From positions 372,001 to 436,000 of the forward strand of contig OX337239.1 in NCBI GenBank assembly GCA_946965045.2: 64,000 bases of DNA. Reading direction: 5' to 3'. Source of the stretch: Epithemia pelagica (lineage: Eukaryota > Protista > Bacillariophyta). The notes below the pieces were generated by a model. The model saw only the letters and a program-made list of their open reading frames with translations, was not told where the DNA came from and did no database searches. Within the stretch, counting starts at the first letter, position 1. Each line of letters begins with the position of its first letter. This document shows, one piece after another, positions 9,074-54,340 of the stretch. A program made the translations under genes and the position numbers.

Positions 9074-9273
9074 NNNNNNNNNNNNNNNNNNNNNNNNNNN
9101 NNNNNNNNNNNNNNNNNNNNNNNNNNNNNNNNNNNNNNNNNNNNNNNNNNNNNNNNNNNNNNNNNNNNNNNNNNNNNNNNNNNNNNNNNNNNNNNNNNNN
9201 NNNNNNNNNNNNNNNNNNNNNNNNNNNNNNNNNNNNNNNNNNNNNNNNNNNNNNNNNNNNNNNNNNNNNNNNN
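9074..9273. other. Assembly gap (200 N)
   Basis: Run of exactly 200 N. Confidence 0.99.
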
Positions 9274-9480
9274 CTAAAAAAAAAAACACGATTTTTTTTT
9301 TTTCAAAATTTTTTTTAAAAAAAAAAAATCAGAGATTTTTTTTTTTTAAAAAAAATTTTGAAAAAAAAAAAATCGTGTTTTTTTTTTTAGACCCCCCCAA
9401 AAATTTTTTTTTCAAAAAAGAAATTGGAGAAAAAAAAAAAAAAGCGGAAATTGGAAATTTCCGAAGGAAATTTGAGTTTA
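9274..9480. other. Low-complexity homopolymer-rich contig end, probably low-quality sequence
   Basis: Alternating poly-A and poly-T runs directly after the gap. Confidence 0.6.
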
Positions 9481-9747
9481 TCCCAAAAACCAAAAATCCG
9501 TACGGCTCCTCCTCCTACGATTATCACGCGGGTAGTGACTATATACCAGTTTTTGAACAGACAACCCAGCTGAAGTTGCTGTTCAAAGGTTTGTATAATC
9601 GTGACATTTGCATGCCAGGCGGATTTAATTTGCTACCGCCCCTGAGCTTTTTCTAAGTTGGCTTGTTTATCTCAAGTAATTAGTTATTAAAATAAACTAA
9701 TTACTTATACGTTGTTTATTTATGTTTATTTTTTTTATATTTTCCAA

Positions 9748-12700
9748 TTCAACCAAATAATTATGTAAAATTATTTTCATTTTAATAAAATGAAATAAAA
9801 TGATAATCAAAATTAATTATTAATTATTAAAATCATTGATTTTTTATACTATTTTTAGAAATAAAAAACAGACAACCAAAACAGATAAATAAAATCATAG
9901 GTTACTACCTATGATTTATGATTTTTTGTGATTTTGATACCAATTTAAGCCTTATTATATACCGAATTTTGAACCACAAATTTTCAATTTTTTGGCAAAA
10001 TTTTTAAATTTGTGGTTCAAAATTATTTATTAAAATTATATCTTTTCAACCAAATGACCAACTAATTATGCAAAATTGATTTTATTTTAATAAAATGAAA
10101 TAAAATGATAATCAAAATTAATTATTAATTATTAAAATCATTGATTTTTTATACTATTTTTAAAAATAAAAAACGGATAACCAAAACAGATAAATAAAAT
10201 CATAGGTTACTACCTATGATTTATGATTTTTTGTGATTTTGATACTAATTTAAGCCTTATTATATACCGAATTTTGAACCACAAATTTTCAATTTTTAAA
10301 TAAAATTTTCAAATTTGTGGTTCAAAATTATTTATTAAAATTATATCTTTTCAACCAAATGACCAACTAATTATGCAAAATTGATTTTATTTTAATAAAA
10401 TGAAATAAAATAAAATAAAATGATAATCAAAATCAATTATTAATTATTAAAATCATTGATTTTTTATACTATTTTTAAAAATAAAAAACAGACAACCAAA
10501 ACAGATAAATAAAATCATAGGTTACTACCTATGATTTGTGATTTTTTGTGATTTTGATACCAATTTAAGCCTTATTATATACCGAATTTTGAACCACAAA
10601 TTTTCAGTTTTTTGGCAAAATTTTTAAATTTGTGGTTCAAAATTATTTATTAAAATTATATCTTTTCAACCAAATGACCAACTAATTATGCAAAATTGAT
10701 TTTATTTTAATAAAATGAAATAAAATGATAATCAAAATTAATTATTAATTATTAAAATCATTGATTTTTTATACTATTTTTAAAAATAAAAAACGGATAA
10801 CCAAAACAGATAAATAAAATCATAGGTTACTACCTACGATTTATGATTTTTTGTGATTTTGATACTAATTTAAGCCTTATTATATACCGAATTTTGAACC
10901 ACAAATTTTCAATTTTTAAATAAAATTTTCAAATTTGTGGTTCAAAATTATTTATTAAAATTATACCTTTTCAACCAAATGACCAACTAATTATGCAAAA
11001 TTGATTTTATTTTAATAAAATGAAATAAAATGATAATCAAAATCAATTATTAATTATTAAAATCATTGATTTTTTATACTATTTTTAAAAATAAAAAACA
11101 GACAACCAAAACAGATAACTAAAATCATAGGTTACTACCTATGATTTATGATTTTTTGTGATTTTGATACTAATTTAAGCCTTATTATATACCGAATTTT
11201 GAACCACAAATTTTCAATTTTTAAATAAAATTTTCAAATTTGTGGTTCAAAATTATTTATTAAAATTATATCTTTTCAACCAAATGACCAACTAATTATG
11301 CAAAATTGATTTTATTTTAATAAAATGAAATAAAATGAAATAAAATGATAATCAAAATCAATTATTAATTATTAAAATCATTGATTTTTTATACTATTTT
11401 TAAAAATAAAAAACAGACAACCAAAACAGATAAATAAAATCATAGGTTACTACCTATGATTTGTGATTTTTTGTGATTTTGATACCAATTTAAGCCTTAT
11501 TATATACCGAATTTTGAACCACAAATTTTCAATTTTTTGGCAAAATTTTTAAATTTGTGGTTCAAAATTATTTATTAAAATTATATCTTTTCAACCAAAT
11601 GACCAACTAATTATGCAAAATTGATTTTATTTTAATAAAATGAAATAAAATGATAATCAAAATTAATTATTAATTATTAAAATCATTGATTTTTTATACT
11701 ATTTTTAAAAATAAAAAACGGATAACCAAAACAGATAAATAAAATCATAGGTTACTACCTACGATTTATGATTTTTTGTGATTTTGATACTAATTTAAGC
11801 CTTATTATATACCGAATTTTGAACCACAAATTTTCAATTTTTAAATAAAATTTTCAAATTTGTGGTTCAAAATTATTTATTAAAATTATACCTTTTCAAC
11901 CAAATGACCAACTAATTATGCAAAATTAATTTTATTTTAATAAAATGAAATAAAATGAAATAAAATGATAATCAAAATCAATTATTAATTATTAAAATCA
12001 TTGATTTTTTATACTATTTTTAAAAATAAAAAACAGACAACCAAAACAGATAAATAAAATCATAGGTTACTACCTATGATTTGTGATTTTTTGTGATTTT
12101 GATACCAATTTAAGCCTTATTATATACCGAATTTTGAACCACAAATTTTCAATTTTTTGGCAAAATTTTTAAATTTGTGGTTCAAAATTATTTATTAAAA
12201 TTATATCTTTTCAACCAAATGACCAACTAATTATGCAAAATTGATTTTATTTTAATAAAATGAAATAAAATGATAATCAAAATTAATTATTAATTATTAA
12301 AATCATTGATTTTTTATACTATTTTTAAAAATAAAAAACGGATAACCAAAACAGATAAATAAAATCATAGGTTACTACCTACGATTTATGATTTTTTGTG
12401 ATTTTGATACTAATTTAAGCCTTATTATATACCGAATTTTGAACCACAAATCTTCAATTTTTAAATAAAATTTTCAAATTTGTGGTTCAAAATTATTTAT
12501 TAAAATTATACCTTTTCAACCAAATGACCAACTAATTATGCAAAATTGATTTTATTTTAATAAAATGAAATAAAATGAAATAAAATGATAATCAAAATCA
12601 ATTATTAATTATTAAAATCATTGATTTTTTATACTATTTTTAAAAATAAAAAACAGACAACCAAAACAGATAAATAAAATCATAGGTTACTACCTATGAT

Positions 12701-16557: not shown

Positions 16558-19385
16558 ATTATATTGTTAGTTTTTTAAAGCATTTTAATTTATTAAACTT
16601 TAAACCTATTAAAATAATAGTTTATTATTTATACTAAAAAATTATAATTAAAGGAAAATTTCCCACATATTTTTATGGTTATTTTTTATAAGTTTAACTA
16701 ATCAGCGATTACATTTGGTAATATAGCTGAATCATCATTTACTTATTGAATTTGGTCCTTTCGTACTAAAATTTAAGCCTCTTAATTTTTTTATCAATTG
16801 TGAAAGATAAGGACCAAACTGTCTTACGACGTTTTGAACTCAGATCATGTACCCCTTTAATTGACGAACAGTCAAACCCTTGGAAACAAATGCATTTCCA
16901 GGATGGGATAATCCAACATCGAGGTATTAAGCAATTTTGTTGATAAGGAGCTCGCAAAAATTATTAACCTGTTATCCCCAGAGTACCTTTTATTCGTTAA
17001 GCAATCAGCATACCATTTTGAATGATTGGATCATTATAATCGATTAATTAAAATCCCTGTTTAATTGGTTAATTTTACAGTCAATTAATTTATATTAACT
17101 ATTATATTTTTGTGTGAAATTAATTTTATACACCCCCGTTACATTTTAGGAGGCCACCGCCCCAGTCAAACTACCAATTAAATAAATATTTTTTATATAA
17201 TTTGTTAAAAATTAGTTAAAATAAAATTTCATAAGTGGTATTCCATACTAGTTAAAAATATTTTATTGTACAATAATAAAAATTTAATACCAATTATAAT
17301 TATTAGTGCTTATTAATGTTGATAAAATAAGCATCAATAAATTAACAAATTAATAATAACAAAACCACCTATCCTTTATACAAAATTTTTATTAACAGTA
17401 TTTAATTATAGTAAAGGTTCATGGGGTCTTTCCGTCTTTTCATAATTGTTTTGTATTTGCACAAAAATTATAAGTTCATTATATTTATATTAAAGACAGT
17501 TAAACAGTCGTTATGCCATTCATGCAGGACACCAATAAAATGCCAAGGAATTTCGCTACCTTTGAACTGTCAAAATTACAGCTGCCGTTTACGATAGTTT
17601 GAAATATTAACAAAATAATGTTAGTACTCTTTGATCTGATTCGCACTGGGCAGGCATCAGTCCTTATACTAGTTTTTACAAATTCGCAAGGACCTAAGTT
17701 TTTGTTAAACAGGCGCTGTTTTTGTTTTTATAAATTATAATAAATACTTTAATTTATTTATTATTTATTGACCTTTTAACCAAAGTTATAAGGCTTTTTT
17801 GCCGAGTTCCTTTAATATAATTTTTATAAACATTTTTATATACTAAATAAATTCACCAGTGTCGGTCATGTACGGTTATAAAGCAAAGCTTTATAAAATT
17901 AATTTTTTCCTGAATATTTTTATTAATATTTTATTATAAACCAGTAAATATATTATTAGTTTAAATATTGTCATTAATTTAATAATAATGAATTTAACTA
18001 ATATTTACCCATTAAAAATAAAACTGTCGTTATTTTTTTAGGGTCCGATTTACAACCAAAAATTAATTTTTTGGAACCTGTGAACTAATAAATGATAATG
18101 ATTTTTATTTATTATTTAAAATTACTAATATTAATATTATCAATCCTGATAAAAATTTATATTACTATAAAAAAAATTCCAACTATTACTTAACAGGACG
18201 TTTTGCTACCATTTAATATTATTTATAATTAAGTAATATATTAAATTTAAAGTTTCGGTATTAAATAATTTAAATTTTATTAATTATAAATATTCAAAAT
18301 TTAATTTAGTGAACATTTACGTACTCTTTAAATGATCGCTGGTTCCAAGCATACATACAAAATTTTTTAATTTTTGATTATTTTTTAATAAATTACTTTT
18401 GAAAACCTTAACTATTAATATGGGCTGTTTCCCTTTAAACAAATTTGAACCTTAGCATTCAATGTTTGACTATTAAAAAATTTTGGTTAAAATTCACAGT
18501 TTAAATAAACTTCGTAAAATATTAATTTCCGTTGTTTATTAATAGCGTTACCTTTAACATAATTTTTTTAATGCTATACTAAAATATATTTCGCAAAAAA
18601 CCAGCTATTTCCGAGTTTGATTAGCATTTCACCACTAACCATAAATCATCCCAACATTTTGCCACATGTACGGGTTCGACCTTCCAATAATTTAAAAATT
18701 AATTTTTAGTCTGTTTATGGTTAAATCACTCGGTTTCGGGTAATTATTTTAAAAACTTAAATATGCTTTGCTTTTTAAAACTTAATTTTTTTTAGCTTTT
18801 GTATATAATATTTAATTCAAGCTTGCTTTTAAAATAAACTTATTAATCCATTATTCAAAAGGTACTTTATTGTTTTTAAAATTAAACTATAAAAATTTAT
18901 TTACATCAAATTTTAATTGTTACAATTTCGAAAAAGCTATTCACCAAATTTCCTTTACAGTACTAAATATGCTATATAATATTAAAACTTTAAATTGTAA
19001 GGTTAGTTCCTTATTTTAACAATACAATAAATTATTGTTATGTTTTTAATTTAATTTTTATATTTTTACAGGGCTATCCTTTTTTAGCTTAAAATTAAAA
19101 TAAATAAAAGTAAATTAGTATTTTGTTTATTTTTGTTCACAACTAATAATAAACTCTCGCTTGATTTTAATTATTTTAGTTACTAGGATGTTTCGGTTCA
19201 CTAAATTTATTTTTATTTTATTTATAAAAAACTTAAATATAAAATAAGTTATTTTTTAATGGTCGATAATATTTAAATTTAACTTGATTATGTTTGTTAT
19301 AAATATATTTCGTTTTTATACGTCGATATTATGTTTTAATATAAAGGTTATTATTTGATGCATTTTAGAAATAATTTTATTTAAT
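16558..19385 (-). rRNA. rnl: Mitochondrial large subunit rRNA (ends approximate)
   Basis: Conserved LSU motifs on the plus strand as reverse complement, e.g. AAACTGTCTTACGACG, CCAACATCGAGGT, GGAATTTCGCTACC, GAGTTTGATTAGCATTTCACC. No intron evident. Confidence 0.95.
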
Positions 19386-19392
19386 ATAAAAT

Positions 19393-19466
19393 GATGAATT
19401 ATAGGACTTGAACCTATAAAAATAAAACCACAATTTATTATTTTAACCAATTAAATTAAATTCATC
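19393..19466 (-). tRNA. trnH: tRNA-His(GUG)
   Basis: Cloverleaf with anticodon arm ATAAA-TTGTGGT-TTTAT; encoded G-1 pairs with C73. Confidence 0.9.
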
Positions 19467-19473
19467 AAGTTAT

Positions 19474-21450
19474 TTATAAAAATAGTAGTATTAATATGTT
19501 TATAAATAATAAATTAATATTAATATTAGTAATATGTACTATTTGATACAGTATAAATATAAAGCCGATTAATTTACTCCACAATAAACTATTAAAATAA
19601 TTTAATTGTATATTATTATAAACGTTACTCAACTGTAAAGCATTAAATGAAATTCCATTAGGCCCCAGTAGTTCAAAAATTCCTTTATCAATAAATTTAT
19701 AACTTATTGAATAACCAAATTTAAAAAACCATTGTCCTAATATGTCGTTGTATATTTTATCATAATACCATTTTCGATTTAAAAAATTGTATATTTTTAA
19801 ATTAGTTGGAATTAATTTTACTTGAACTAATACTTTAGTATAATTAAAATATAAGTAAAACGCTAAAAAAGCTCCTAATAAACTTAAACATGTTGGTGCT
19901 ACTTTATGTGAAATTAAAATGAATTCTGCATCAAAAATATTAAATAACTTTAAATTAATAAATATTGTATTGTTAAAAAAATTATTACCAAAACCAGTTA
20001 TCAAGTCCTTACTATAATAGCCAATAATTATACTTGGTATAATTAAAATACTTAAAACAAATTTTATATTAAAATTTGACTCAATAGCATAGCCTAAAAT
20101 ATTTTTAAAACCGTTCGGCTTTGATAAAAAAACTAAAAAAATTGCTCGAAATGAATAATACGCGGTGATAAAAGCACCAATACTACCTATTACAAAACTA
20201 TAAGTACCTAATAAATTGTATTTTGCAAAGGTACACTCTAAAATAAAATCCTTAGAGTAAAAACCTGTTAAATAAGGGAATCCTATTAATGCTAACGAGC
20301 CAATAAGCGTACTTTTATAAGTAAATGGTAATTGAATTTTAAGTCCTCCCATTTTCCGAATATCCTGTTCATCATTAATTGAATGAATAGTTGATCCAGA
20401 GCTCAAAAACAAAAGTGCTTTGAAAAATGCATGATTTGTTAAATGAAATAAACTAATGAAATAATCACTTAAGCCATTTGTAAATATCATATAACCTAAT
20501 TGACTACAAGTGGAATAGGCTATTATTTTTTTTGTATCATTTTGTGTCAAACCAACTAATGCGCTTATCGATGAAGTTAAAATGCCAACTATTACAATTA
20601 AATTTAATATTTTATTTGTATTTTCAAATAAAAATGATAAACGAATTAATAAAAAAACTCCAGCGGTTACCATAGTAGCTGCGTGAATTAAAGCTGAAAC
20701 TGGGGTTGGTCCTTCCATAGCATCCGGCAGCCAAGTATGCAGCCCTAATTGTGCTGATTTACCTACAGCACCAATAAATAATAACAAACAAATAATATTA
20801 AAAATATGTATATCAAATATTATTTGTTTATTTGTCTTAAATAAACAAATAAGTAAACTTAAAGCATCATAATTTAATGTTTTAAAAGTTATAAAAATAA
20901 ATAAAATGGCCCCTAATAATCCAAAATCACCTATCCGATTTATAAGCATGGCTTTTATAGCTGCTTTATTAGCTTGAATTCGAATAAACCAAAAATTAAT
21001 TAATAAATATGAACATAAACCAACACCTTCCCATCCAATAAACATTTGAATTAAATCATTACTTGTAATTAATAATAACATAAAAAATGTAAATAATGAT
21101 AAATATGCAATAAATTTTGATAAAAAAGGATCATGGCCCATATATTCAATCGAATAAAAATGAACTAAAAATGAAATAAATACAATAATAAAACACATTG
21201 TAATTGTTAAACTATCAAAAACAAAACACCAATAAATATTTAAAAATTCGGAATCGATCCAATAAAATAAATCAATAAATATAGGAGCCTTATATAATAT
21301 AATTTCGAAATAAATATTTACTACTAATAATAAACACGTCAGTAAACAAAAAATAGCTAATTTTGTAGAGCCTAAAAAGCCTAAATATTTGCCAAATAAA
21401 CCAACAAATAAGGAACTAATTAATGGTAATATTAATATTAATAAACACAT
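19474..21450 (-). CDS. nad5: NADH dehydrogenase subunit 5
   Basis: 658 aa; GWEGVGLCSYLLINFW, WLPDAMEGPTPVSALIHAATMV. Confidence 0.98.
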   Translation of the reverse strand: MCLLILILPLISSLFVGLFGKYLGFLGSTKLAIFCLLTCLLLVVNIYFEIILYKAPIFIDLFYWIDSEFLNIYWCFVFDSLTITMCFIIVFISFLVHFYSIEYMGHDPFLSKFIAYLSLFTFFMLLLITSNDLIQMFIGWEGVGLCSYLLINFWFIRIQANKAAIKAMLINRIGDFGLLGAILFIFITFKTLNYDALSLLICLFKTNKQIIFDIHIFNIICLLLFIGAVGKSAQLGLHTWLPDAMEGPTPVSALIHAATMVTAGVFLLIRLSFLFENTNKILNLIVIVGILTSSISALVGLTQNDTKKIIAYSTCSQLGYMIFTNGLSDYFISLFHLTNHAFFKALLFLSSGSTIHSINDEQDIRKMGGLKIQLPFTYKSTLIGSLALIGFPYLTGFYSKDFILECTFAKYNLLGTYSFVIGSIGAFITAYYSFRAIFLVFLSKPNGFKNILGYAIESNFNIKFVLSILIIPSIIIGYYSKDLITGFGNNFFNNTIFINLKLFNIFDAEFILISHKVAPTCLSLLGAFLAFYLYFNYTKVLVQVKLIPTNLKIYNFLNRKWYYDKIYNDILGQWFFKFGYSISYKFIDKGIFELLGPNGISFNALQLSNVYNNIQLNYFNSLLWSKLIGFIFILYQIVHITNININLLFINILILLFL

Positions 21451-21455
21451 TTAAT

Positions 21456-21547
21456 TGGAAAAAATAGGATTCGAACCTATGATATAATAATATTGTTATT
21501 ATACAAAATTTAGCAAATTTTTGTTATAACCACTCAACCATTTTTCC
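21456..21547 (-). tRNA. trnS: tRNA-Ser(GCU)
   Basis: Acceptor GGAAAAA/TTTTTCC, anticodon arm AAAAT-TTGCTAA-ATTTT, long variable arm. Confidence 0.9.
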
Positions 21548-21999
21548 TTATCACTAAATATTTGTTTGATTATAAATTTTAACTCACTACTATTTATTGT
21601 TTTAAATTTTAATACTATATTTAAAAGTATAGTATTTTTTTTTAAGTTGGAGTTTTCATAATAAATTAAATTTTCACTATAAATATAATTATTATTTATA
21701 AACTGTTTATTTTTATATATTACTGCATTAATAATAAATTTGTTTAAATAAGCATATAAATCAAATTTTTTAAAAACTATTTTTAAATGAAATGGTGTTC
21801 CACTTTTTAGCTTTAATATGACTTTTTTTTCATAGTTGTAAAATATATTTAGCATAAATAAATTATTTATTAAATCATTAAATGTTACTACATTTAATAT
21901 CAATACAAATTTATTGATCACTGGAATTTTTGTTATTAATAAATAATTATATTTATTTAAAAAATCGTAAGTTAATACCTTATAAAAGTGTTTTAGCAT
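21499..21999 (-). CDS. rpl5: Ribosomal protein L5 (C-terminus reads into trnS)
   Basis: MLKHFYKVLTYDFLNKY...KIPVINKFVL...YAYLNKFI resembles diatom mitochondrial rpl5. ATG at 21999; the ORF-track start at 22062 lies inside trnD. Confidence 0.7.
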   Translation of the reverse strand: MLKHFYKVLTYDFLNKYNYLLITKIPVINKFVLILNVVTFNDLINNLFMLNIFYNYEKKVILKLKSGTPFHLKIVFKKFDLYAYLNKFIINAVIYKNKQFINNNYIYSENLIYYENSNLKKNTILLNIVLKFKTINSSELKFIIKQIFSDKEKWLSGYNKNLLNFV

Positions 22000-22012
22000 A
22001 ATATGGTAATAT

Positions 22013-22087
22013 CGAAAATAATGGGACTTGAACCCACAATCTATAACATGACAAGTTATCACTTTAACCGATTTAAGTTATATTTTC
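22013..22087 (-). tRNA. trnD: tRNA-Asp(GUC)
   Basis: Acceptor GAAAATA/TATTTTC, anticodon arm ATAAC-TTGTCAT-GTTAT, G73. Confidence 0.92.
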
Positions 22088-22112
22088 AAACAATATTGAT
22101 TAACTGATTAAC

Positions 22113-23573
22113 CGTTTTATTTTTCCAACCGCACGCTCACGTACGATTACCTTGTTACGACTTCATACAAATCACAAATTTTTTAATAAATATAAATTTA
22201 TAATAGTTATATTTTCAAACAAAATAAATTTTTTGCATGTGACGGGCGGTATGTACAAAACTAAAGATATTATTCACCATAACATGCTGATTTATGATTA
22301 CTTGTGATTCCAACTTCATATAATCAAGTTTCAGATTATAATTAGTACTGAAAAAATTTTTAAAATTAAAATAAACATATGTTTTATTAATTTTTTGTAA
22401 TTTTTATTGTAATACGTGTGTTGCCCAATTTATTAGGGTCACAATGACTTGTTATAATCCTTATTTATTTAATTTGTTATTAATTATAAGTTAAATTTTA
22501 TGATAATTTATTATTTTTAACAATAAGGGTTTCGTCCGTTAAAAGGATTTAACCAAACATTTCACAAAACGGACTTACAACAGCCGTGCAGCACCTGTAT
22601 TTACAAGACCAAAGATATGCTAATTATTTTTTGGTATTATAAATATTCAAAAATTGGTAAGGTTTTACGTGTATTGTCGTATTAAACCACATATTCCACC
22701 ACTAAAGTTAGCTCCCGTCAGTTTCTTTGAATTTAAATAATAAAATTTTAATTTTCAGGTAAAATACTTATTGCGTTAGCTTAAAATTTAAAATAAAATA
22801 CTGAAAACTTATTTTAAATTATAGTATTCATAATTTACAAAATGGATTACCGGGGTATCTAATCCCGTTTACTACCCAAATTTTCGTATAACAATGTCAG
22901 TTTTTACTAAAAAACAGTTTTCACAATTGATGTTCCTTTATATATTATAAAATTTTATTTTTACGTATAAAATTCCATTTTTCGGAAAAAAACTCAAGTA
23001 AATTTAATTATTATAAAAATTTTTAAAATAACTATTTAAAATTTATATTATAATTTCAAATTACCATTTTTATACTTTTACACCTAATAAATACGAATAA
23101 CGCTGGCCCCATTCGTATTACCGCGACTGCTGGCACGAATATTTGTCGGGACTACTAATTATCAAAATCATTATGATTTTAATAAATTTAAATTTTACAA
23201 CTATAAAAGCAGTCATCATATATTAAATTTCACTGGATCAAATTTTCATTCATTGTCCAATATTCCCCACTGCTGACTTATAAAGTCTGAAACTTTTTAT
23301 TTCCAGTGTGACTGATATTTCGTTAAAAACAGTTAAATATAATTGGCTTGGTAAGCTATTAACTATTACCAACTACCTAATATTAAATAAATTAATTTTT
23401 TAGCAAATTATTTTTTAACTAAATAAATTTTTTTGAATATTTTATATTTCATAAAGCTAAAAAGTATCAATTCATTTTGTACTCACCTGTACGCTACAAA
23501 ATAAATTGTTAAACTAGCATGTGTTAAGTGAATTTATAGCGTTCATTCAAAGCCAGAATAAAACTTATTAAAA
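22113..23573 (-). rRNA. rns: Mitochondrial small subunit rRNA (ends approximate)
   Basis: Reverse-complement SSU motifs TCCAACCGCA, TACCTTGTTACGACTT, GTATTACCGCGACTGCTGGCAC, GACGGGCGGT, AGCCAGAATAAAACT. Confidence 0.96.
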
Positions 23574-23665
23574 AATTAATATAAATTATTGAAATAATTT
23601 ATTTTATTTGGTTATACTAAAATCTATCAATGAAATCAATTATTGTTTCGTTTTAATATTGTTAC

Positions 23666-23720: not shown

Positions 23721-23754
23721 TTGATTTTTAAAACAATATCAACATACTAAAACT

Positions 23755-26700
23755 AATAAATAAAATCATAGGTTACTATCTATGATTTGTGATTTTTTGT
23801 GATTTTGATACTAATTTAAGCCTTACTATATACCGAATTTTGAACCACAAATTTTCAATTTTTAAATAAAATTTTTAAATTTGTGGTTCAAAATTATTTA
23901 TTAAAATTATATTTTTTCAACCAAATGACCAAATAATTATGCAAAATTGATTTTATTTTAATAAAATCAAATAAAATGATAATCAAAATTAATTATTAAT
24001 TATTAAAATCATTGATTTTTTATACTATTTTTAAAAATAAAAAACAGATAACCAAAACAGATAAATAAAATCATAGGTTACTACCTATGATTTATGATTT
24101 TTTGTGATTTTGATACTAATTTAAGCCTTATTATATACCGAATTTTGAACCACAAATTTTCAATTTTTAAATAAAATTTTTAAATTTGTGGTTCAAAATT
24201 ATTTATTAAAATTATATCTTTTCAACCAAATGACCAACTAATTATGCAAAATTGATTTTATTTTAATAAAATGAAATAAAATGATAATCAAAATTAATTA
24301 TTAATTATTAAAATCATTGATTTTTTATACTATTTTTAAAAATAAAAAACGGATAACCAAAACAGATAAATAAAATCATAGGTTACTACCTATGATTTAT
24401 GATTTTTTGTGATTTTGATACTAATTTAAGCCTTATTATATACCGAATTTTGAACCACAAATTTTCAATTTTTAAATAAAATTTTCAAATTTGTGGTTCA
24501 AAATTATTTATTAAAATTATATCTTTTCAACCAAATGACCAACTAATTATGCAAAATTGATTTTATTTTAATAAAATGAAATAAAATGATAATCAAAATT
24601 AATTATTAATTATTAAAATCATTGATTTTTTATACTATTTTTAAAAATAAAAAACAGACAACCAAAACAGATAAATAAAATCATAGGTTACTACCTATGA
24701 TTTGTGATTTTCTGTGATTTTGATACCAATTTAAGCCTTATTATATACCGAATTTTGAACCACAAATTTTCAATTTTTTGGCAAAATTTTTAAATTTGTG
24801 GTTCAAAATTATTTATTAAAATTATATCTTTTCAACCAAATGACCAACTAATTATGCAAAATTGATTTTATTTTAATAAAATGAAATAAAATGATAATCA
24901 AAATTAATTATTAATTATTAAAATCATTGATTTTTTATACTATTTTTAAAAATAAAAAACGGATAACCAAAACAGATAAATAAAATCATAGGTTACTACC
25001 TATGATTTATGATTTTTTGTGATTTTGATACTAATTTAAGCCTTATTATATACCGAATTTTGAACCACAAATTTTCAATTTTTAAATAAAATTTTCAAAT
25101 TTGTGGTTCAAAATTATTTATTAAAATTATATCTTTTCAACCAAATGACCAACTAATTATGCAAAATTGATTTTATTTTAATAAAATGAAATAAAATGAA
25201 ATAAAATGATAATCAAAATCAATTATTAATTATTAAAATCATTGATTTTTTATACTATTTTTAAAAATAAAAAACAGACAACCAAAACAGATAAATAAAA
25301 TCATAGGTTACTACCTATGATTTGTGATTTTTTGTGATTTTGATACCAATTTAAGCCTTATTATATACCGAATTTTGAACCACAAATTTTCAATTTTTTG
25401 GCAAAATTTTTAAATTTGTGGTTCAAAATTATTTATTAAAATTATATCTTTTCAACCAAATGACCAACTAATTATGCAAAATTGATTTTATTTTAATAAA
25501 ATGAAATAAAATGATAATCAAAATTAATTATTAATTATTAAAATCATTGATTTTTTATACTATTTTTAAAAATAAAAAACGGATAACCAAAACAGATAAA
25601 TAAAATCATAGGTTACTACCTACGATTTATGATTTTTTGTGATTTTGATACTAATTTAAGCCTTATTATATACCGAATTTTGAACCACAAATTTTCAATT
25701 TTTAAATAAAATTTTCAAATTTGTGGTTCAAAATTATTTATTAAAATTATACCTTTTCAACCAAATGACCAACTAATTATGCAAAATTAATTTTATTTTA
25801 ATAAAATGAAATAAAATGAAATAAAATGATAATCAAAATCAATTATTAATTATTAAAATCATTGATTTTTTATACTATTTTTAAAAATAAAAAACAGACA
25901 ACCAAAACAGATAAATAAAATCATAGGTTACTACCTATGATTTGTGATTTTTTGTGATTTTGATACCAATTTAAGCCTTATTATATACCGAATTTTGAAC
26001 CACAAATTTTCAATTTTTTGGCAAAATTTTTAAATTTGTGGTTCAAAATTATTTATTAAAATTATATCTTTTCAACCAAATGACCAACTAATTATGCAAA
26101 ATTGATTTTATTTTAATAAAATGAAATAAAATGATAATCAAAATTAATTATTAATTATTAAAATCATTGATTTTTTATACTATTTTTAAAAATAAAAAAC
26201 GGATAACCAAAACAGATAAATAAAATCATAGGTTACTACCTACGATTTATGATTTTTTGTGATTTTGATACTAATTTAAGCCTTATTATATACCGAATTT
26301 TGAACCACAAATCTTCAATTTTTAAATAAAATTTTCAAATTTGTGGTTCAAAATTATTTATTAAAATTATACCTTTTCAACCAAATGACCAACTAATTAT
26401 GCAAAATTGATTTTATTTTAATAAAATGAAATAAAATGAAATAAAATGATAATCAAAATCAATTATTAATTATTAAAATCATTGATTTTTTATACTATTT
26501 TTAAAAATAAAAAACAGACAACCAAAACAGATAAATAAAATCATAGGTTACTACCTATGATTTGTGATTTTTTGTGATTTTGATACCAATTTAAGCCTTA
26601 TTATATACCGAATTTTGAACCACAAATTTTCAATTTTTTGGCAAAATTTTTAAATTTGTGGTTCAAAATTATTTATTAAAATTATATCTTTTCAACCAAA

Positions 26701-27922
26701 TGACCAACTAATTATGCAAAATTGATTTTATTTTAATAAAATGAAATAAAATGATAATCAAAATTAATTATTAATTATTAAAATCATTGATTTTTTATAC
26801 TATTTTTAAAAATAAAAAACGGATAACCAAAACAGATAAATAAAATCATAGGTTACTACCTACGATTTATGATTTTTTGTGATTTTGATACTAATTTAAG
26901 CCTTATTATATACCGAATTTTGAACCACAAATTTTCAATTTTTAAATAAAATTTTCAAATTTGTGGTTCAAAATTATTTATTAAAATTATACCTTTTCAA
27001 CCAAATGACCAACTAATTATGCAAAATTGATTTTATTTTAATAAAATGAAATAAAATGATAATCAAAATCAATTATTAATTATTAAAATCATTGATTTTT
27101 TATACTATTTTTAAAAATAAAAAACAGACAACCAAAACAGATAACTAAAATCATAGGTTACTACCTATGATTTGTGATTTTTTGTGATTTTGATACTAAT
27201 TTAAGCCTTATTATATACCGAATTTTGAACCACAAATTTTCAATTTTTAAATAAAATTTTCAAATTTGTGGTTCAAAATTAATTATTAATTATTAAAATC
27301 ATTGATTTTTTATACTATTTTTAAAAATAAAAAACGGATAACCAAAACAGATAAATAAAATCATAGGTTACTACCTATGATTTATGATTTTTTGTGATTT
27401 TGATACTAATTTAAGCCTTATTATATACCGAATTTTGAACCACAAATTTTCAATTTTTAAATAAAATTTTCAAATTTGTGGTTCAAAATTATTTATTAAA
27501 ATTATATCTTTTCAACCAAATGACCAACTAATTATGCAAAATTGATTTTATTTTAATAAAATGAAATAAAATGATAATCAAAATTAATTATTAATTATTA
27601 AAATCATTGATTTTTTATACTATTTTTAAAAATAAAAAACAGACAACCAAAACAGATAAATAAAATCATAGGTTACTACCTATGATTTGTGATTTTCTGT
27701 GATTTTGATACCAATTTAAGCCTTATTATATACCGAATTTTGAACCACAAATTTTCAATTTTTTGGCAAAATTTTTAAATTTGTGGTTCAAAATTATTTA
27801 TTAAAATTATATCTTTTCAACCAAATGACCCAATAATTATACAAAATTGATTCTATTTTAATAAAATGATAATCAAAATTAATTATTAAAATCATTTATT
27901 TTTTATACTATTTTTAAAAATA
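23755..27922 (+). repeat. Tandem array 2 of the ~305-bp unit (~14 copies, one with a 95-bp deletion)
   Basis: Same unit and orientation as array 1. The unit near 27275 lacks 95 bp between two TCAAAATTA microhomologies. Confidence 0.97.
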
Positions 27923-34928: not shown

Positions 34929-36470
34929 TTAAAAGAAATTTGTTACTTGAATTCGATTAATTTTTGAACATTTTATTAAAATTAATGATTGATTAGTGAA
35001 GCCATCATTGCCAATAAAAAAGTCATTTAATGAAAATTTAATAATTGTATTTACGTATTTAACTTGTTTATTTATATTAAATAATATATTTTTAAATATA
35101 AATGTATTACTATTATTTATTGTTAAATTTTTTGTAATTATTTTTTTGGCCAAATAAAATAAAAAAATAATAAAAATAAAATTAAAATGGCTAAATAAGT
35201 TATAATTAACAAATATAGTTTTTTTAATAATTTGGTTTACAGTATTTAACTTTGTTAATAGAACTCGTAATAATTTCCAACTTGATTTTAAATTATTCAA
35301 CGAAAATAATTTGTTTGTTTGTTTTATGATTCCTTGTGTATTGAAAAATAATTCGATATTTTCAAATATATTTTTTGTTGGTAAATAAAAATGAGTTGAA
35401 TTTTTCGGTAATACTAATGAATTTGAAAACATATTAAAATAATTTTGATTTAGATATGTTTTTTTAATTGACATCAAGTTAATAATTTTTGTTAAATATA
35501 GTAATTTAATTTTTGTTAATATTAATAAATTTTTATTTTCAATATTAATAAAATAAATAAAACTAAATTGATAAATAATTTTATTAGTGTTGTTAGAATC
35601 TGTATTAATTAAATTAATACCAGTATTCCAAATTGATGAATTTAATATATTTAATTTGTAAAAATAAATGAACTTATTTAAATATAACATAATTATATAA
35701 ATAATAGGATTATCAATACGTTTATATAAATCGGAATTAAATATAAAAAATGGTGCTTTCGCAGCTATTATATTTTGACAAATTGGATGGCGACCTTCCG
35801 TAATCAAAATAAGAGTTTTTAAATTATTACTCAACAATTTAAATGAAAAAACTAAATTAAAAAATGAACTAATACTAAATAATTTAAAGGAACCTTTCAA
35901 AAAACGCTGTTTTAGTTTTAAATATAATAAACTATTTTGCAATTTTATATTTGAATTAATTAATAAACACATATTTGAGTTATTTAATTTTATTAAATTA
36001 AACAATAAAGTATGCTCTAAATTATTATTTGTTTTAACATTATTAGCATTGATAATTTTAAAGAAAAAGTATTTTTGTTTAAATAAAGCTAATAAACATA
36101 ACGAATTTAAATTTAAGTATTCATAAACAATATAAAAATAACTTATAAACCGATATTTTAAAAAATTTAATTCAAAAATATACAATGTTTGTACTAAAGT
36201 TTTGGCTAATTTTTTAATTTTATTAAAAAATAGAAAATTAGTAGTATTAAAATTTTTTAGACCATCAAAAAAATAACGTGTTTTATTATTTATATATGAG
36301 TTTTTATGAAATTGACTTGAGTAAGTTGGTTCGATTTGCAAAATTTGATTTTTATTAATTAAAAATTTTACATTTGAACAAAAAGTGTCAATCGGATCAA
36401 AATGCACAATTTGTTGAATTTCCCACCCACGTATTTCAAAAGGATAATTTTTAGTCGTTAACGCTCCTAT
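34929..36470 (-). CDS. nad11: NADH dehydrogenase subunit 11, C-terminal part (nad11b)
   Basis: The frame opens upstream of the ORF-track GTG (36407) with [17 protein letters not shown], the conserved GALT..PY.F..R.WE motif. No ATG; ATA at 36470 is proposed as the start. The rest is a divergent molybdopterin-like domain. Confidence 0.8.
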
Positions 36471-37065
36471 TGAAAATTTGATTAGTCAACCAACCAACAG
36501 GACAAATATCAATTACATTAGCTGATAGCTCGGAAAATATTATTTTATGTGTGTATGATCCAATTTCACTTTTATTACCCCGCCCAAAAACACCTAACTC
36601 ATTTGATCCACAAATATCATTAAAAAACCTAACACAACGCGTGCAGTGAATACACCTTGTCATAACAGTTTTTATAATAGGTCCAAGTTCCTTATCGTTA
36701 ACAATACGTTTGTAATTAAAAAAACGACGTTTAATAAAACCAAAAAAAATTGACTGATCCTGTAAGTCACAATCGCCACCTTGGTCACAAATCGGACAGT
36801 CTAATGGATGGTTCAATAATAAAAATTCAATTATATTTTCACGAGCTTTTTTAACTAATGGAGTATCAAAAAAAATTTGATTTTTATTTAAAATAATTTC
36901 AATATTGGTTGAACATGATACTATAGGTTTTGGTGCTTTATTAATTTCAACTAAACAAACTCGGCAATTACCCGCTATTGATAAATCATTATAAAAACAG
37001 TAATGTGGTATTTGTATACCATTAGTAATTAAATATAATAATAATGATACTTTTTTAATACTCAT
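36451..37065 (-). CDS. nad11: NADH dehydrogenase subunit 11, N-terminal Fe-S part (nad11a)
   Basis: [53 protein letters not shown]; ATG at 37065. Confidence 0.95.
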
Positions 37066-37106
37066 TTTAATTTTTTGTATAAAAAACAAGTTATTGTTTA
37101 AAACTA

Positions 37107-38045: not shown

Positions 38046-39027
38046 AAACCAAATAACTGTGAAAATTGATTTTTTATACTATTTTAAAAAATAGAAAACG
38101 GATAAATAAAATCATAGGTTACTACCTATGATTTATGATTTTTCGTGATTTTGATACTAATTTAAGCCTTATTATGTACCGAATTTTGAAACACAAATTT
38201 TCAATTTTTAAATAAAATTTTCAAATTTGTGGTTGAAAATTACTTATTAAAATTATATCTTTTCAACCAAATGACCAAATAATTATGCAAAATTATTTTT
38301 ATTTCAATAAAATGAAATAAAATGATAATTAAAATCACTTATTAATAAATTGATTATCATTGATTTTTTATACTACTTAAAAAATAATAACCAAATAACT
38401 ATGCAAAATTGATTTTATTCTAATAAAATGAAATAAAATGATAATCAAAATTAATTATTAATTATTAAAATCATTGATTTTTTATACTATTTTAAAAAAT
38501 AAAAAACGGATAACCAAAACAGATAAATAAAATCATAGGTTACTACCTATGATTTGTGATTTTTTGTGATTTTGATACTAATTTAAGCCTTATTATATAC
38601 CGAATTTTGAACCACAAATTTTCAATTTTTAAATAAAATTGAAAATTTGTGGTTCAAAATTATTTGTTAAAATTATATCTTTTCAACCAAATGACCAAAT
38701 AATTATGCAAAATTATTTTTATTTTAATAAAATGAAATAAAATGATAATTAAAATCACTTATTAATAAATTGATTATCATTGATTTTTTATACTATTTTA
38801 AAAAATAAAAAACGGATAACCAAAACAGATAAATAAAATCATAGGTTACTACCTATGATTTATGATTTTTTGTGATTTTGATACTAATTTAAGCCTTATT
38901 ATATACCGAATTTTGAACCACAAATTTTCAATTTTTAAATAAAATTTTCAAATTTGTGGTTGAAAATTATTTATTAAAATTATATCTTTTCAACCAAATG
39001 ACCAAATAATTATGCAAAATTGATTTG
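38046..39027 (+). repeat. Array 3: about three more diverged copies of the ~305-bp unit
   Basis: Contains AAATCATAGGTTACTACCTATGATTT three times (near 38108, 38532 and 38838) plus the long GAACCACAAA hairpin, with substitutions. Confidence 0.92.
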
Positions 39028-48975: not shown

Positions 48976-48980
48976 TCAAT

Positions 48981-49052
48981 TAGGAATTATAGGATTTGAA
49001 CCTATAAATTTAGATCATGAGTCTAAATCGGCTAACCAATTACCAAATTCCT
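48981..49052 (-). tRNA. trnM: tRNA-Met(CAU), probably the initiator
   Basis: Anticodon arm TTAGA-CTCATGA-TCTAA, acceptor AGGAATT/AATTCCT; compact D arm. Confidence 0.82.
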
Positions 49053-49054
49053 GA

Positions 49055-49318
49055 TAAAAAAACGGATAACCAAAACAGATAAATAAAATCATAGGTTACT
49101 ACCTATGATTTGTGATTTTGATACTAATTTAAGCCTTATTATATAACGAATTTTGAACCACAAATTTTCAATTTTTAAATAAAATTTTTAAATTTGTGGT
49201 TCAAAATTATTTATTAAAATTATATCTTTTCAACCAAATGACCAAATAATTATGCAAAATTGACTTTATTTTAATAAAGTGAAATAAAATGATAATCAAA
49301 ATTGATTATTATAAATAT
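49055..49318 (+). repeat. Locus 4: single, nearly complete copy of the ~305-bp unit
   Basis: Both hairpins are present; the copy abuts trnM and overlaps the nad2 stop region. Confidence 0.92.
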
Positions 49319-50955: not shown

Positions 50956-50970
50956 TTTTAATTTTTAAGT

Positions 50971-51573: not shown

Positions 51574-51628
51574 AATTTTATATTTTAATAAAAATAGATT
51601 AATTTTTTAATATTAAAAGCTTTAAATA

Positions 51629-53098
51629 TTAGATATATATTAATTCAATTAAGAAATTAATATTAAAATGTATGAGTGTCAATAAAAAATTACTATATAT
51701 GCCGGAAATAATTGAACCTATTAATAATGGTATAAAAATACAAAACTCTCTGAAATTTATATCAAAAAATTGTTTAGTATATTGTAACTTTAAATTTCCA
51801 AATACTAAACGATTGAATAGCCATAAACTGTAAGTTGCACTAATAATTAAGCCGGTAGCACTTAACAAAGTTAAAAATATATTGATTTTAAATGATCCAA
51901 TAAAAATTAATAATTCCCCAATAAAATTACCTGTTCCTGGAAAGCCCGTATTAGCTAAACTAAAAAATAAAAAACATAAAGTGAATAATGGCATAACTAA
52001 AGCTAAACCACTATAATATTGTATAATACGAGTTTTATAGCGATCATAAATAACTCCAATAATTGAAAATAAAGCGGATGATACGAAGCCATGATTTATA
52101 CTTTGAAATATTGCGCCCTCCATACCAATAGTATTGTAACTAAAAAGGCCTAGTAATACCAAATTCATGTGAGCAATTGATGTATAAGCAATAACCCTTT
52201 TTAAATCAGACTGTCGAACTGCAGTAAAGGAACCAAATATTACTCCCATAATAACTAAAGTATAAACTAATGGTGTAAAATAAAATGAACCATAAGGAAA
52301 AATTGGTATTGAAAATCGAATAAAACCAAAAGTTCCTAATTTTAACAAAATACCAGCTAAAATAACAGAACCAATGGTTGGGGCTTCAACATGGGCTTCT
52401 GGTAACCATAAATGAAATGGAATCATTGGTACTTTGCTAGCAAATGATAAAAAAAAACTAAACCATAATAATTTTTGTTCATTATATATAAATGAAAAAG
52501 TCAAAAGTAACTGGTAATCAGTGGTACCAATTTGGTCAAGGATATAAATAATGCTAATTAGCATAACAATTGACCCAAAAAGTGTATATAAAAAAAAATA
52601 ATAATTAGCTAAAATTTTACGATTTCGTGAACCCCAAATACCAATGATTAAAAACATTGGAATTAAAATAATTTCAAAAAATATATAAAAAAACAAAATA
52701 TCCAAACAACAAAATACGTTTAATAAACAAAATTCCAAAAAAAGAAAAATGATATAATATTCTTTAAAAAAAAATTGAATGCTTTTCCAGCTTAATATTA
52801 AACAAACTGGAAACAATAAAGTTGTTAATAATAAAAAAATTAACGATATACCATCAATTCCGAGCAAAAAATTTAAATTAAATAATAAAATTAATTTCAA
52901 TTTACAAATAAATTGAAACTTAACACTTGATTTGTCAAAAAAAAGTAGTAAATAAACAAAATTTAAAAAAATTAAACTTGAAATATTTAAAGCTATTAAT
53001 TTAATGAATAGTTTTTGTTTTAATGATGAAAATAAAATTAAAATTATCCCAATAATTGGGAGTAAAATAATAAATAGCAAAATATAATTTAAAACCAT
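51629..53098 (-). CDS. nad4: NADH dehydrogenase subunit 4
   Basis: GIDGISL, KVPMIPFHLWLPEAHVEAPT, LAGILLKLG. Confidence 0.98.
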   Translation of the reverse strand: MVLNYILLFIILLPIIGIILILFSSLKQKLFIKLIALNISSLIFLNFVYLLLFFDKSSVKFQFICKLKLILLFNLNFLLGIDGISLIFLLLTTLLFPVCLILSWKSIQFFFKEYYIIFLFLEFCLLNVFCCLDILFFYIFFEIILIPMFLIIGIWGSRNRKILANYYFFLYTLFGSIVMLISIIYILDQIGTTDYQLLLTFSFIYNEQKLLWFSFFLSFASKVPMIPFHLWLPEAHVEAPTIGSVILAGILLKLGTFGFIRFSIPIFPYGSFYFTPLVYTLVIMGVIFGSFTAVRQSDLKRVIAYTSIAHMNLVLLGLFSYNTIGMEGAIFQSINHGFVSSALFSIIGVIYDRYKTRIIQYYSGLALVMPLFTLCFLFFSLANTGFPGTGNFIGELLIFIGSFKINIFLTLLSATGLIISATYSLWLFNRLVFGNLKLQYTKQFFDINFREFCIFIPLLIGSIISGIYSNFLLTLIHFNINFLIELIYI

Positions 53099-53107
53099 AA
53101 AAAATAT

Positions 53108-53173
53108 TGTATTTTATAGGATTTGAACCTATAGTATATCATATAAATATAATGACCAAATAGTTAAAAATAC
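53108..53173 (-). ncRNA. 66-nt degenerate tRNA-like element overlapping the nad9 stop
   Basis: Perfect acceptor GTATTTT/AAAATAC and T arm ATAGG-TTCAAAT-CCTAT. D region shortened, anticodon-like arm TATAT-TTATATG-ATATA, 2-nt variable region. Confidence 0.55.
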
Positions 53174-53706
53174 ACATTATTCCATGGTGAGTGAAAATTA
53201 AAAATACGATAATGTTGAGTTAATTCAATTTTTTCATACAGTATTCGATTTTTAGTTAAATTATATTTAGCATCAATAAAGCCTGTTAAAGGAAAATCCT
53301 TTCGTAATGGGAAACCATGAAAACCATAATCAGTTAATAAACGTACCAAATTTTTACGTTTTAAAAAAATAATACCAAACATATCCCATATTTCATTTTC
53401 CCACCAAATTGAACAAATAAATAATTTGCTAATTGAAAAAATCGCTATAATTTCATTAACAATAACTTTAATACGTAACCTATTATTAAATTTTAAAGAT
53501 AAAATTTCATAAATAATAACAAATCGATTTTTATTTTCAGGATAATCGACTCCTGATATACATGTTAATAATTTAAAATAATATTTAAAATGATATTTTA
53601 AAATAGTCAAAATATTAATTAAAATTTTAGAGTTTAAAAAAATACTATACTTTACCGAAAAAAAATACTGAATTTTAATAATTGGAATATCGAAAAAAAT
53701 TAACAT
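53164..53706 (-). CDS. nad9: NADH dehydrogenase subunit 9
   Basis: ISGVDYP, WWENEIWDMFGI, LLTDYGFHGFPLRKDFPLTG. Confidence 0.97.
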   Translation of the reverse strand: MLIFFDIPIIKIQYFFSVKYSIFLNSKILINILTILKYHFKYYFKLLTCISGVDYPENKNRFVIIYEILSLKFNNRLRIKVIVNEIIAIFSISKLFICSIWWENEIWDMFGIIFLKRKNLVRLLTDYGFHGFPLRKDFPLTGFIDAKYNLTKNRILYEKIELTQHYRIFNFHSPWNNVYF

Positions 53707-53737
53707 AAATTATATGTACACTTTAGATAACCCTAAG

Positions 53738-53978
53738 ATCAAAATCATTGATTTCTTATACTATTTTTAAAAATAAAAAACGGATAACCAAAACAGATAA
53801 ATAAAATCATAGGTTATTGCCTATGATTTATGATTTTTTGTGATTTTGATACTAGTTTAATAAAACGAAACAAAACGATAATTAAAATCACTTATTAATT
53901 ATAGGTTATAACTCTTTGCCATTTTCAATTTTTTTAATTTTGGTATAAATTTAAACTTTATTATATACCGAATTTTAA
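53738..53978 (+). repeat. Locus 5: degenerate partial copy of the ~305-bp unit
   Basis: AAAATCATTGATTT...AAATCATAGGTTATTGCCTATGATTT...TTATTATATACCGAATTTT. Confidence 0.85.
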
Positions 53979-54067
53979 ACAGTGTCTTTCAATTATTTTT
54001 AAAAGTAATTTGTTCAAGTAATACTATTTCAACTAAATAGCTTTAGTAAGGAATGAATTGGTTACTA

Positions 54068-54267
54068 NNNNNNNNNNNNNNNNNNNNNNNNNNNNNNNNN
54101 NNNNNNNNNNNNNNNNNNNNNNNNNNNNNNNNNNNNNNNNNNNNNNNNNNNNNNNNNNNNNNNNNNNNNNNNNNNNNNNNNNNNNNNNNNNNNNNNNNNN
54201 NNNNNNNNNNNNNNNNNNNNNNNNNNNNNNNNNNNNNNNNNNNNNNNNNNNNNNNNNNNNNNNNNNN
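54068..54267. other. Assembly gap (200 N)
   Basis: Run of exactly 200 N. Confidence 0.99.
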
Positions 54268-54340
54268 TCAAGTACCGAAAACAATCCTGGTGCAAAAGAT
54301 ATTTGTTCGTCCTATTTTCTTTTGTTCAATTCCAATCGCT
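54268..54340 (+). promoter_or_regulatory. Probable upstream flank of DUF707-like paralog 4
   Basis: CAAAAGATATTTGTTCGTCCTATTTTCTTTTGTTCAATTCCAA matches 6868-6910 and 4492-4530, which lie 200-350 bp upstream of the paralog 3 and 2 starts. Confidence 0.7.

Follow-up and report, generated by a model that had tools for sequence, protein, structure and literature searches.

A mitochondrial contig inside a nuclear DUF707 cluster of Epithemia pelagica: probable misplacement by scaffolding

In the assembled nuclear sequence of the diatom Epithemia pelagica, a block of mitochondrial DNA interrupts the last gene of a tandem DUF707 cluster. Has mitochondrial DNA been inserted into a nuclear gene, as a NUMT, or has an organelle contig been set into the chromosome by the assembly? 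The original prediction, made on the window (the whole stretch of 64,000 nucleotides analysed here), offered both readings. A genome paper for E. pelagica was not found in the literature. For comparison, we used the contig-level assembly ENA ERZ21939226 of the same organism; the two assemblies probably share reads, and their independence is therefore incomplete. We conclude, with a probability of about 0.88, that the block at 9274-54067 is a free mitochondrial contig of E. pelagica, a pennate diatom, put into an ordinary contig break by Hi-C scaffolding.

Layout of the locus and the two haplotypes

The nuclear flanks and the gaps comprise the following features.

1-9073: nuclear contig of haplotype A with the tandem DUF707 cluster, 100% identical to contig ctg1358l over all 9073 bp
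806-1924, + strand: DUF707 paralog
3009-4013, - strand: DUF707 paralog
5515-6792, - strand: DUF707 paralog
8309-9073, - strand: DUF707 paralog 4, cut by the contig end
9074-9273: 200-N scaffolding gap, a run of N with no sequenced junction
54068-54267: second 200-N scaffolding gap, a run of N
54268-64000: nuclear contig of haplotype B, beginning in the promoter region of DUF707 paralog 4

The Pfam matches to DUF707 are weak, and the paralogs align at 79-85%. Both junctions had been described as 200-N placeholders, and our count agrees: the window holds these two runs of N only, 200 each. The composition switches at the gaps, with a G+C content of 45.8% on the left (1-9073), 20.7% in the block (9274-54067) and 49.3% on the right (54268-64000). 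Between the two fixed gaps lies exactly one contig, the mitochondrial block of 44,794 bp, which is what a misplaced contig would look like. A gap of 200 N is the default of the Hi-C scaffolder YaHS. The YaHS paper itself does not state the gap length. Across each gap the sequence is discontinuous, the true neighbour of 9073 being DUF707 sequence and not 9274.

As originally noted, paralog 4 is cut at a position equivalent to about 6285 in the neighbouring paralog (8298-9068 aligns to 5504-6280 at 85%), and position 54305 aligns to 6877, with 54305-54335 agreeing with 6877-6907 in 30 of 31 bases. As the chief evidence of collinearity, this 31-bp match is now superseded by the direct evidence of a contig. 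The 2.07-Mb contig ctg1358l contains window 1-9073 with 0 mismatches, continues after 9073 with 490 bp of normal DUF707 5' coding and promoter sequence, and then enters the right flank; it passes through the site without N and without mtDNA. The 490-bp bridge, at about 1,668,880-1,669,380 of ctg1358l, aligns collinearly with paralog 2 over its 5' coding part and the sequence upstream of it (blocks of 94%, 91% and 78%). From its first base the whole right flank is 95-98% identical to ctg1358l, which is collinear with the window to 64000 (98.0% in 54268-54622, 93.7% in 54647-56542). For haplotype A, 9073 and 54268 are thus joined at contig level without the block. The flanks are collinear, and the picture of a mitochondrial block between collinear nuclear flanks is confirmed as a whole. 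The missing nuclear stretch, originally put at about 550 bp, measures 490 bp in haplotype A; the other haplotype carries 93 bp more at the site, so about 583 bp are expected there.

The left flank is 94.8-96.1% identical to ctg1263l, a contig of the other haplotype, i.e., it differs by 4-5%. The right flank is 100% identical to ctg705l from 54551 to 64000 and differs from ctg1358l by 2-6%. Since the left side belongs to haplotype A (ctg1358l) and the right side to haplotype B (ctg705l), the scaffold switches haplotype at the gaps. Contigs of the two haplotypes, A on the left and B on the right, thus meet in the window, and the break is an ordinary contig boundary.

For haplotype B, ctg1263l passes the break at 9073 by 229 bp (haplotype-A coordinates) without mtDNA, and the coding sequence of this haplotype reaches within a few dozen codons of the paralog 4 start, likewise free of mtDNA. 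The contig ctg1263l stops at the equivalent of L003 18497, the right contig of the window starts at the equivalent of 18759, and ctg705l starts 283 bp beyond the start of the latter. For the 261 bp in between (L003 18498-18758, haplotype-A coordinates), no haplotype-B contig was seen in ENA ERZ21939226, and an exact look-up of a 163-aa ORF (54540-55031) for another haplotype-B contig over this stretch gave none. Homology to haplotype A holds for ctg1263l up to its final base, and for the window's right contig from its first base onward. Neither assembly holds a chimeric nuclear/mitochondrial contig end or a mitochondrial tail; mitochondrial and nuclear sequence contiguous on one sequenced molecule, the mark of a NUMT, was not found in these contigs. 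The missing 490 bp show no similarity to either end of the block or to any other part of it.

Content of the mitochondrial block

The block is composed of the following features.

9274-9460: anomalous start of the mitochondrial contig, a hairpin followed by further homopolymer-rich sequence
9454-9673: G+C-richer unique stretch beside array 1, with the top 200-bp G+C content of the contig (43.5%)
9752-16557, + strand: tandem array 1, 22 copies of a 305/315-bp unit
16621-23574, - strand: rRNA block with rnl (16621-19376), trnH, nad5 (19474-21450), trnS, trnD and rns (22113-23574)
23749-27869, + strand: tandem array 2, of the 305/315-bp unit of array 1
27953-53706, - strand: main mitochondrial gene block with nad1, rps14-like, nad3, cox3, cob, rps10, atp6, cox1, nad11 (two ORFs), nad4L, atp9, rpl14, rps12, rps4, rps2, rpl6, rps8, rpl16, rpl2, cox2, nad7, nad2-type, nad6, nad4, nad9 and tRNAs; rps11-like and tatC lie on the + strand
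38270-39026: third, short array inside the main gene block
53738-53980, + strand: degenerate repeat-unit copies upstream of nad9, oriented as array 1 (parts of the unit are matched at 96%, 86% and 85%)

The standard diatom mitochondrial gene set (respiratory chain, atp6/9, tatC, ribosomal proteins, rnl and rns) is present. The major ORFs had been reported to lack internal stops, and we found intact ORFs for nad1-7, nad4L, nad9, split nad11, cob and cox1-3, together with atp6, atp9, tatC and ribosomal proteins. The two ORFs of nad11 (34929-36407 and 36451-37089) lie 43 nt apart. About 29 protein genes could be named, and four or five more ORFs are without assignment. Tandem repeats, i.e., the arrays of the 305/315-bp unit, make up about 11.7 kb.

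ARAGORN, relaxed settings included, and Rfam both yield 17 tRNA genes, a low count. The description of the mitochondrial genome as complete goes beyond the evidence: other diatoms have 25 tRNA genes where the block has 17, and its two ends do not overlap.

In ENA ERZ21939226, exact copies of the nad9, nad5 and cox1 proteins are confined to one contig, ctg994l, which is the free mitochondrial contig. Block and ctg994l show 0 differences in 16558-23655 and 0 in 27870-53879, together 33.1 kb of unique sequence (7,098 + 26,010 bp). They differ solely in the lengths of the tandem arrays; array 2, for instance, spans 4300 bp in the window and 4057 bp in ctg994l. In this comparison the block shows none of the substitutions, truncations or rearrangements that would set a NUMT apart from the resident mtDNA. 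Zero divergence fits a very young insertion as well.

Scaffolding or insertion

The first alternative of the original prediction, an organelle contig scaffolded into the chromosome, agrees with a contig that runs straight through the site (ctg1358l), a block that is one contig between fixed gaps, and the lack of chimeric ends. Its title and second alternative, a whole-mtDNA NUMT inside paralog 4, find no support in that form: haplotype A retains both the 5' part and the promoter without interruption, and the coding sequence of haplotype B is free of mtDNA nearly to the start. Judged from the sequences compared here, the block is almost certainly an assembly error rather than a gene-destroying DNA transfer. 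If it is a scaffolded organelle contig, paralog 4 has not been destroyed by mtDNA. The two nuclear contigs would then be true neighbours, rightly set side by side. The small, very high-copy organelle contig has, on this view, Hi-C contacts with nuclear DNA that amount to diffuse noise, and may for that reason have ended up in the break. The missing 490 bp would have been lost by trimming of overlapping haplotype contig ends, or by a graph break at this point.

The left end of the block bears on two other explanations. Its first 400 bp or so (9274-9673) are atypical for this mtDNA and could in principle be junction filler. A near-perfect hairpin of 117 nt (9274-9390), composed of A/T runs of 11-14 nt and with a fold energy of -63.2 kcal/mol (z -9.6), starts at the very first base of the contig, and seven A/T runs of at least 11 nt fall in 9274-9460 against two in the remaining 44.6 kb. 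These 400 bp might stem from a different nuclear locus, a small genuine NUMT at some other site or a co-cultured organism, in which case the stray piece, and not mitochondrial noise, would have drawn a chimeric contig to this or another true place. The composition of 9274-9460, unlike that of the rest of the contig, would suit such an origin, as would a Markov composition score of 9454-9673 that lies, ambiguously, between those of mitochondrial and nuclear windows. Moreover, ctg994l, the mitochondrial contig of the other assembly, stops short of the segment. Against this, the segment has no match in the window's 18.8 kb of nuclear sequence, 9454-9673 bears no likeness to the missing 490 bp, and a 25-mer from the segment has 0 exact matches among the JGI metagenomes and the GTDB genomes. 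A 93-aa ORF across the left end has no Pfam match and is on no contig of the exact-protein index; the Rfam E-value scan of 9274-9673 showed nothing beyond miRNA-hairpin noise below threshold, located on the palindrome. A search of the JGI metagenomes for the sequence upstream of nad9 in related diatom mitogenomes found no relative. For the hairpin at the first base, a read-end fold-back or junk is the simplest account; neither would carry Hi-C signal, and we regard a chimeric or foreign contig as scarcely to be expected.

A NUMT in both haplotypes is ruled out by the uninterrupted haplotype A of ctg1358l. What would have to be assumed is a very recent heterozygous insertion of near-whole mtDNA (about 45 kb, with no substitutions yet) into the promoter or first codons of paralog 4 in haplotype B only. 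The assembler would have broken at both edges, the insert being identical to abundant free mtDNA, the scaffolder would then have placed the contig correctly, and the hairpin and G+C-richer segment of 9274-9673 would represent filler where the insertion begins on the left. It speaks for this that the haplotype-B contigs of ENA ERZ21939226 end to the left and right of one and the same point, a break that an insertion within the 261 bp would explain, and that the place chosen by the scaffolder lies between collinear flanks; the atypical left end and the zero divergence suit a very young insertion, the latter as well as an artefact. However, a contig break is the precondition of any insertion by a scaffolder, so it does not favour a NUMT, and the left flank actually joined is that of haplotype A, which demonstrably lacks the insertion. 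At each of the four nuclear contig ends, homology to haplotype A extends to the last base, although junction-spanning reads should normally leave mtDNA on nuclear ends in a read-overlap assembly, and the ends of the block are unlike the uncovered nuclear stretch. Furthermore, the diatom so far examined has few NUMTs or none: in Thalassiosira pseudonana, none was found (PMC3101015, Table 1). Taken together, these points make a heterozygous NUMT very improbable.

Comparison with known systems

Organelle contigs misplaced in chromosome scaffolds by Hi-C scaffolding are a routine artefact of assembly curation. The locus shares with them a whole organelle contig with fixed-length N gaps on both sides, flanks that a contig-level assembly joins without interruption, and an insert identical to the free organelle contig; among the features compared, at the level of sequence, nothing differs. 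True NUMTs have sequenced nuclear-organelle junctions, nuclear read depth and usually some divergence, and the mitochondrial insertion on chromosome 2 of Arabidopsis thaliana is an example of a large or whole-genome case. With it the block has in common a near-complete mitochondrial gene set with intact ORFs inside nuclear chromosome sequence. In contrast, both junctions are N gaps here, one haplotype is uninterrupted and divergence is 0 in 33.1 kb. To our knowledge, no diatom NUMT of such a size (about 45 kb) has been described. The NUMT total of A. thaliana is 549 kb (PMC3101015, Table 1).

The main import of the locus concerns assembly quality. Left in place, the block amounts to a false 45-kb NUMT, a falsely broken DUF707 gene on the chromosome, and about 35 genes of the organelle, which annotation pipelines would list as nuclear; surveys of organelle-to-nucleus transfer in diatoms would count it as an insertion of record size. 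The remedy is to move the contig to the organelle record and to fill the nuclear gap with the 490-bp haplotype-A sequence. Were the haplotype-B insertion true after all, it would offer a rare view of organelle DNA entering the nucleus, caught while still segregating, in a lineage nearly without NUMTs.

As a mitochondrial genome, the contig resembles those of other diatoms. Asterionella formosa has a mitochondrial genome of 61.9 kb with a 24-kb repeat region (PMC7800273), and nad11 is split in Didymosphenia geminata and Phaeodactylum tricornutum (PMC7799578). The contig likewise combines nad11 in two domains with a large repeat region (PMC7799578, PMC7800273), and shares with these mitogenomes the tatC-containing gene set and long arrays of a conserved repeat unit. 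It differs from them in its G+C content of only 20.7%, in its 17 tRNA genes against the 25 reported there, and in the arrangement of the repeats, which form three arrays, two of them bracketing the rRNA block, besides stray fragments. The right end of the block runs into such repeat-unit copies, which would fit closure of a putative circle through array 1.

The block between the two gaps

Only two N runs occur in the window, at 9074-9273 and at 54068-54267. Both are 200 letters long, which we take to be the default gap of YaHS. They enclose 44,794 bp, and the change in G+C (45.8% on the left, 20.7% between the gaps, 49.3% on the right) coincides with them. By its rRNA, tRNA and protein gene content, the enclosed block is mitochondrial.

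Features of the window referred to in the text
8309-9073, minus strand: DUF707 paralog 4, cut by the contig end
9752-16557: tandem array 1 of a 305/315-bp unit
16621-19376, minus strand: LSU rRNA gene, bacterial-type
22113-23574, minus strand: SSU rRNA gene, bacterial-type
23749-27869: tandem array 2 of the 305/315-bp unit
34929-36407, minus strand: nad11, molybdopterin-type part (ORF)
36451-37089, minus strand: nad11, N-terminal Fe-S part (ORF)
38270-39026: tandem array 3 of the 305/315-bp unit
near 49057-49208 and 53738-53980: fragments of the 305/315-bp unit

ORFs without interruption were found for nad1, 2, 3, 4, 4L, 5, 6, 7, 9 and a two-part nad11, as well as for cob, cox1-3, atp6, atp9 and tatC, accompanied by the ribosomal protein genes rpl2, 6, 14, 16 and rps2, 4, 8, 10, 11, 12, 14. 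The two nad11 ORFs lie 43 nt apart (34929-37089, minus strand), and a corresponding split is reported for Phaeodactylum and Didymosphenia (PMC7799578). A large repeat region is likewise a known feature among diatom mitogenomes (PMC7799578, PMC7800273), and the insert shares both traits with those described. In itself, it is a rather typical diatom mitogenome, rich in repeats.

The nuclear locus in a second assembly

Four paralogs of DUF707 type, recognised by weak Pfam matches, lie in the left flank. The coordinates and arithmetic of the original prediction are correct: 8298-9068 aligns with 5504-6280 in paralog 3, such that 9073 is equivalent to ~6285, and of the 31 bases at 54305-54335, all but one agree with 6877-6907.

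Via exact-protein look-ups, the same organism was found in the contig-level ENA assembly ERZ21939226, of which three nuclear contigs and one mitochondrial contig are relevant to the site. Contig ctg1358l (2.07 Mb; loci L003 and L004) matches window 1-9073 with 0 mismatches and thus represents the same haplotype, A. Past 9073 it continues for 490 bp (L003 18269-18758) that run in parallel with paralog 2, covering the 5' part of its coding sequence and the region upstream (94%, 91% and 78% identity by block), followed by sequence with 98.0% identity to 54268-54622 and 93.7% to 54647-56542; collinearity with the right flank extends up to 64000 at 95-98%. Neither N nor mitochondrial DNA occurs on this contig at the site. 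As it is unbroken without mtDNA, the haplotype-A neighbour of base 9073 is DUF707 sequence, and the flanks are 490 bp apart. The collinearity of the nuclear flanks claimed earlier is thereby borne out, 9073 being linked to 54268 directly. The proposed loss of a few hundred bp, comprising the DUF707 5' part and promoter, also stands, but on haplotype A it amounts to 490 bp, not ~550.

For the left flank, the second haplotype, B, is represented by ctg1263l (372 kb; L006), with 94.8-96.1% identity to window 1-9073. It extends 229 bp (haplotype-A coordinates) beyond 9073, all DUF707 coding sequence, and is homologous to haplotype A up to its last base. On the right side, ctg705l (10.8 kb; L005) is 100% identical to window 54551-64000. 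From these identities, the window is a mosaic of a haplotype-A contig, a mitochondrial contig and a haplotype-B contig. The gaps sit at a normal boundary between contigs, across which the haplotype changes; only at such boundaries can a scaffolder place a further contig.

Divergence between the haplotypes amounts to 2-6% across the region, and indels are numerous (1-9073 against L006; 54268-64000 against L004); hence the diatom is highly heterozygous here. In paralog 4, 93 bp of haplotype B (L006 161-253) are absent from haplotype A at L003 18338. Its ORF comprises 243-294 aa in haplotype A and at least 361 aa in haplotype B, whereas the sister paralogs reach 372-387 aa; on haplotype A, the copy may have lost part of its N-terminus independently of any mtDNA. 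The right flank harbours a 1110-aa ORF (55044-58376) without Pfam match, which differs by ~5% between haplotypes, and a tandem duplication (60564-62267 and 62268-63513, blocks 87-98% identical), each copy of which carries a 310-aa-type ORF, also without Pfam match.

Scaffolding or nuclear insertion

The ERZ21939226 contig ctg994l (42,803 bp; L001, L002, L007) is the only contig with the exact nad9, nad5 and cox1 proteins. Over 16558-23655 (7,098 bp) and 27870-53879 (26,010 bp) it shows zero differing positions to the insert; differences are limited to tandem-array lengths. The missing 490 nuclear bases have no similarity to the insert ends or the whole insert, the nuclear contig ends at the site carry no mtDNA, and the insert ends carry no sequence of the DUF707 locus.

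The mitochondrial block between two 200-N gaps with collinear flanks is thus confirmed as an observation. For its origin, the original prediction had offered either an organelle contig scaffolded into the chromosome or a very recent whole-mtDNA NUMT that destroyed paralog 4. The block is one contig, identical to the free mitochondrial contig, its ends are not chimeric, haplotype A is uninterrupted, and the haplotype switches across it. With a probability of roughly 0.88, a scaffolding step put a free organelle contig between two truly neighbouring nuclear contigs, in line with the first option. Diffuse Hi-C noise of a high-copy molecule may have led the scaffolder to the gap, and the 490 bp would have been lost either when the overlapping ends of the haplotypes were trimmed or because the graph broke there. 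As stated, the second option, a NUMT wrecking paralog 4, finds no support: haplotype A is continuous at the site, and no contig end is chimeric. In the diatom Thalassiosira pseudonana, no NUMT was found (PMC3101015, Table 1).

Under a narrower variant, only haplotype B would carry a NUMT, inserted very recently into the promoter or the first codons of paralog 4 and thus heterozygous. No haplotype-B contig was seen among the ERZ21939226 contigs at the site over 261 bp (L003 18498-18758, haplotype-A coordinates): ctg1263l stops just before this stretch, and the right-flank contig of the window begins just after it. Such a NUMT would account for this break, and the zero divergence of the insert from free mtDNA fits it as well. 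However, a contig break is also the precondition of a scaffolding artefact and therefore no evidence against one, every contig end is clean, and the left flank actually joined is haplotype A, which lacks the insertion. For these reasons we consider a haplotype-B NUMT quite improbable. Very probably, the chromosome does not in reality contain a mitochondrial genome within a nuclear gene, and the practical value of the finding lies in assembly correction.

Ends, tRNA genes and repeats of the mitochondrial contig

The first 400 bases of the insert (9274-9673) differ in composition from the remaining mtDNA. A near-perfect hairpin of 117 nt (9274-9390, -63.2 kcal/mol, z -9.6), built from A/T runs of 11-14 nt, starts on the first base of the contig, so the contig end may just truncate its left arm. 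Seven such runs lie in 9274-9460, compared with two across the other 44.6 kb. Directly after the hairpin stretch, around 9454-9673 (~220 bp), the 200-bp G+C of the contig peaks at 43.5%, and the composition score falls between those of all mitochondrial and all nuclear windows. No match was obtained for the segment in Rfam, for its 93-aa ORF in Pfam or among exact proteins, or for an exact 25-mer from it in JGI metagenomes and GTDB genomes. It could represent junk from a read end folded back on itself, a genuine control element next to the repeat array, or filler of foreign origin.

The insert encodes 17 tRNA genes, trnW(cca) among them, whereas 25 are reported for other diatom mitogenomes (PMC7800273, PMC7799578). 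None for Ala, Arg, Asn, Gly, Thr or Val was found in the insert, relaxed ARAGORN settings included; either such tRNAs are no longer encoded and are imported, or the contig lacks part of the genome. That the insert is a whole mitochondrial genome, as originally proposed, is plausible, as at its right end it passes into degenerate repeat units oriented like array 1; against completeness stand the 17 tRNA genes and two ends without overlap. The contig may lack a stretch linking 54067 to 9274.

Tandem repeats account for ~11.7 kb of the block. Two of the three arrays bracket the rRNA block (rnl-trnH-nad5-trnS-trnD-rns), and nad2 and nad9 each have stray fragments of the unit upstream. Contig ctg994l terminates within array 1. 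Array 2 spans 4300 bp in the window and 4057 bp in ctg994l, a difference reflecting either length heteroplasmy or assembly error.
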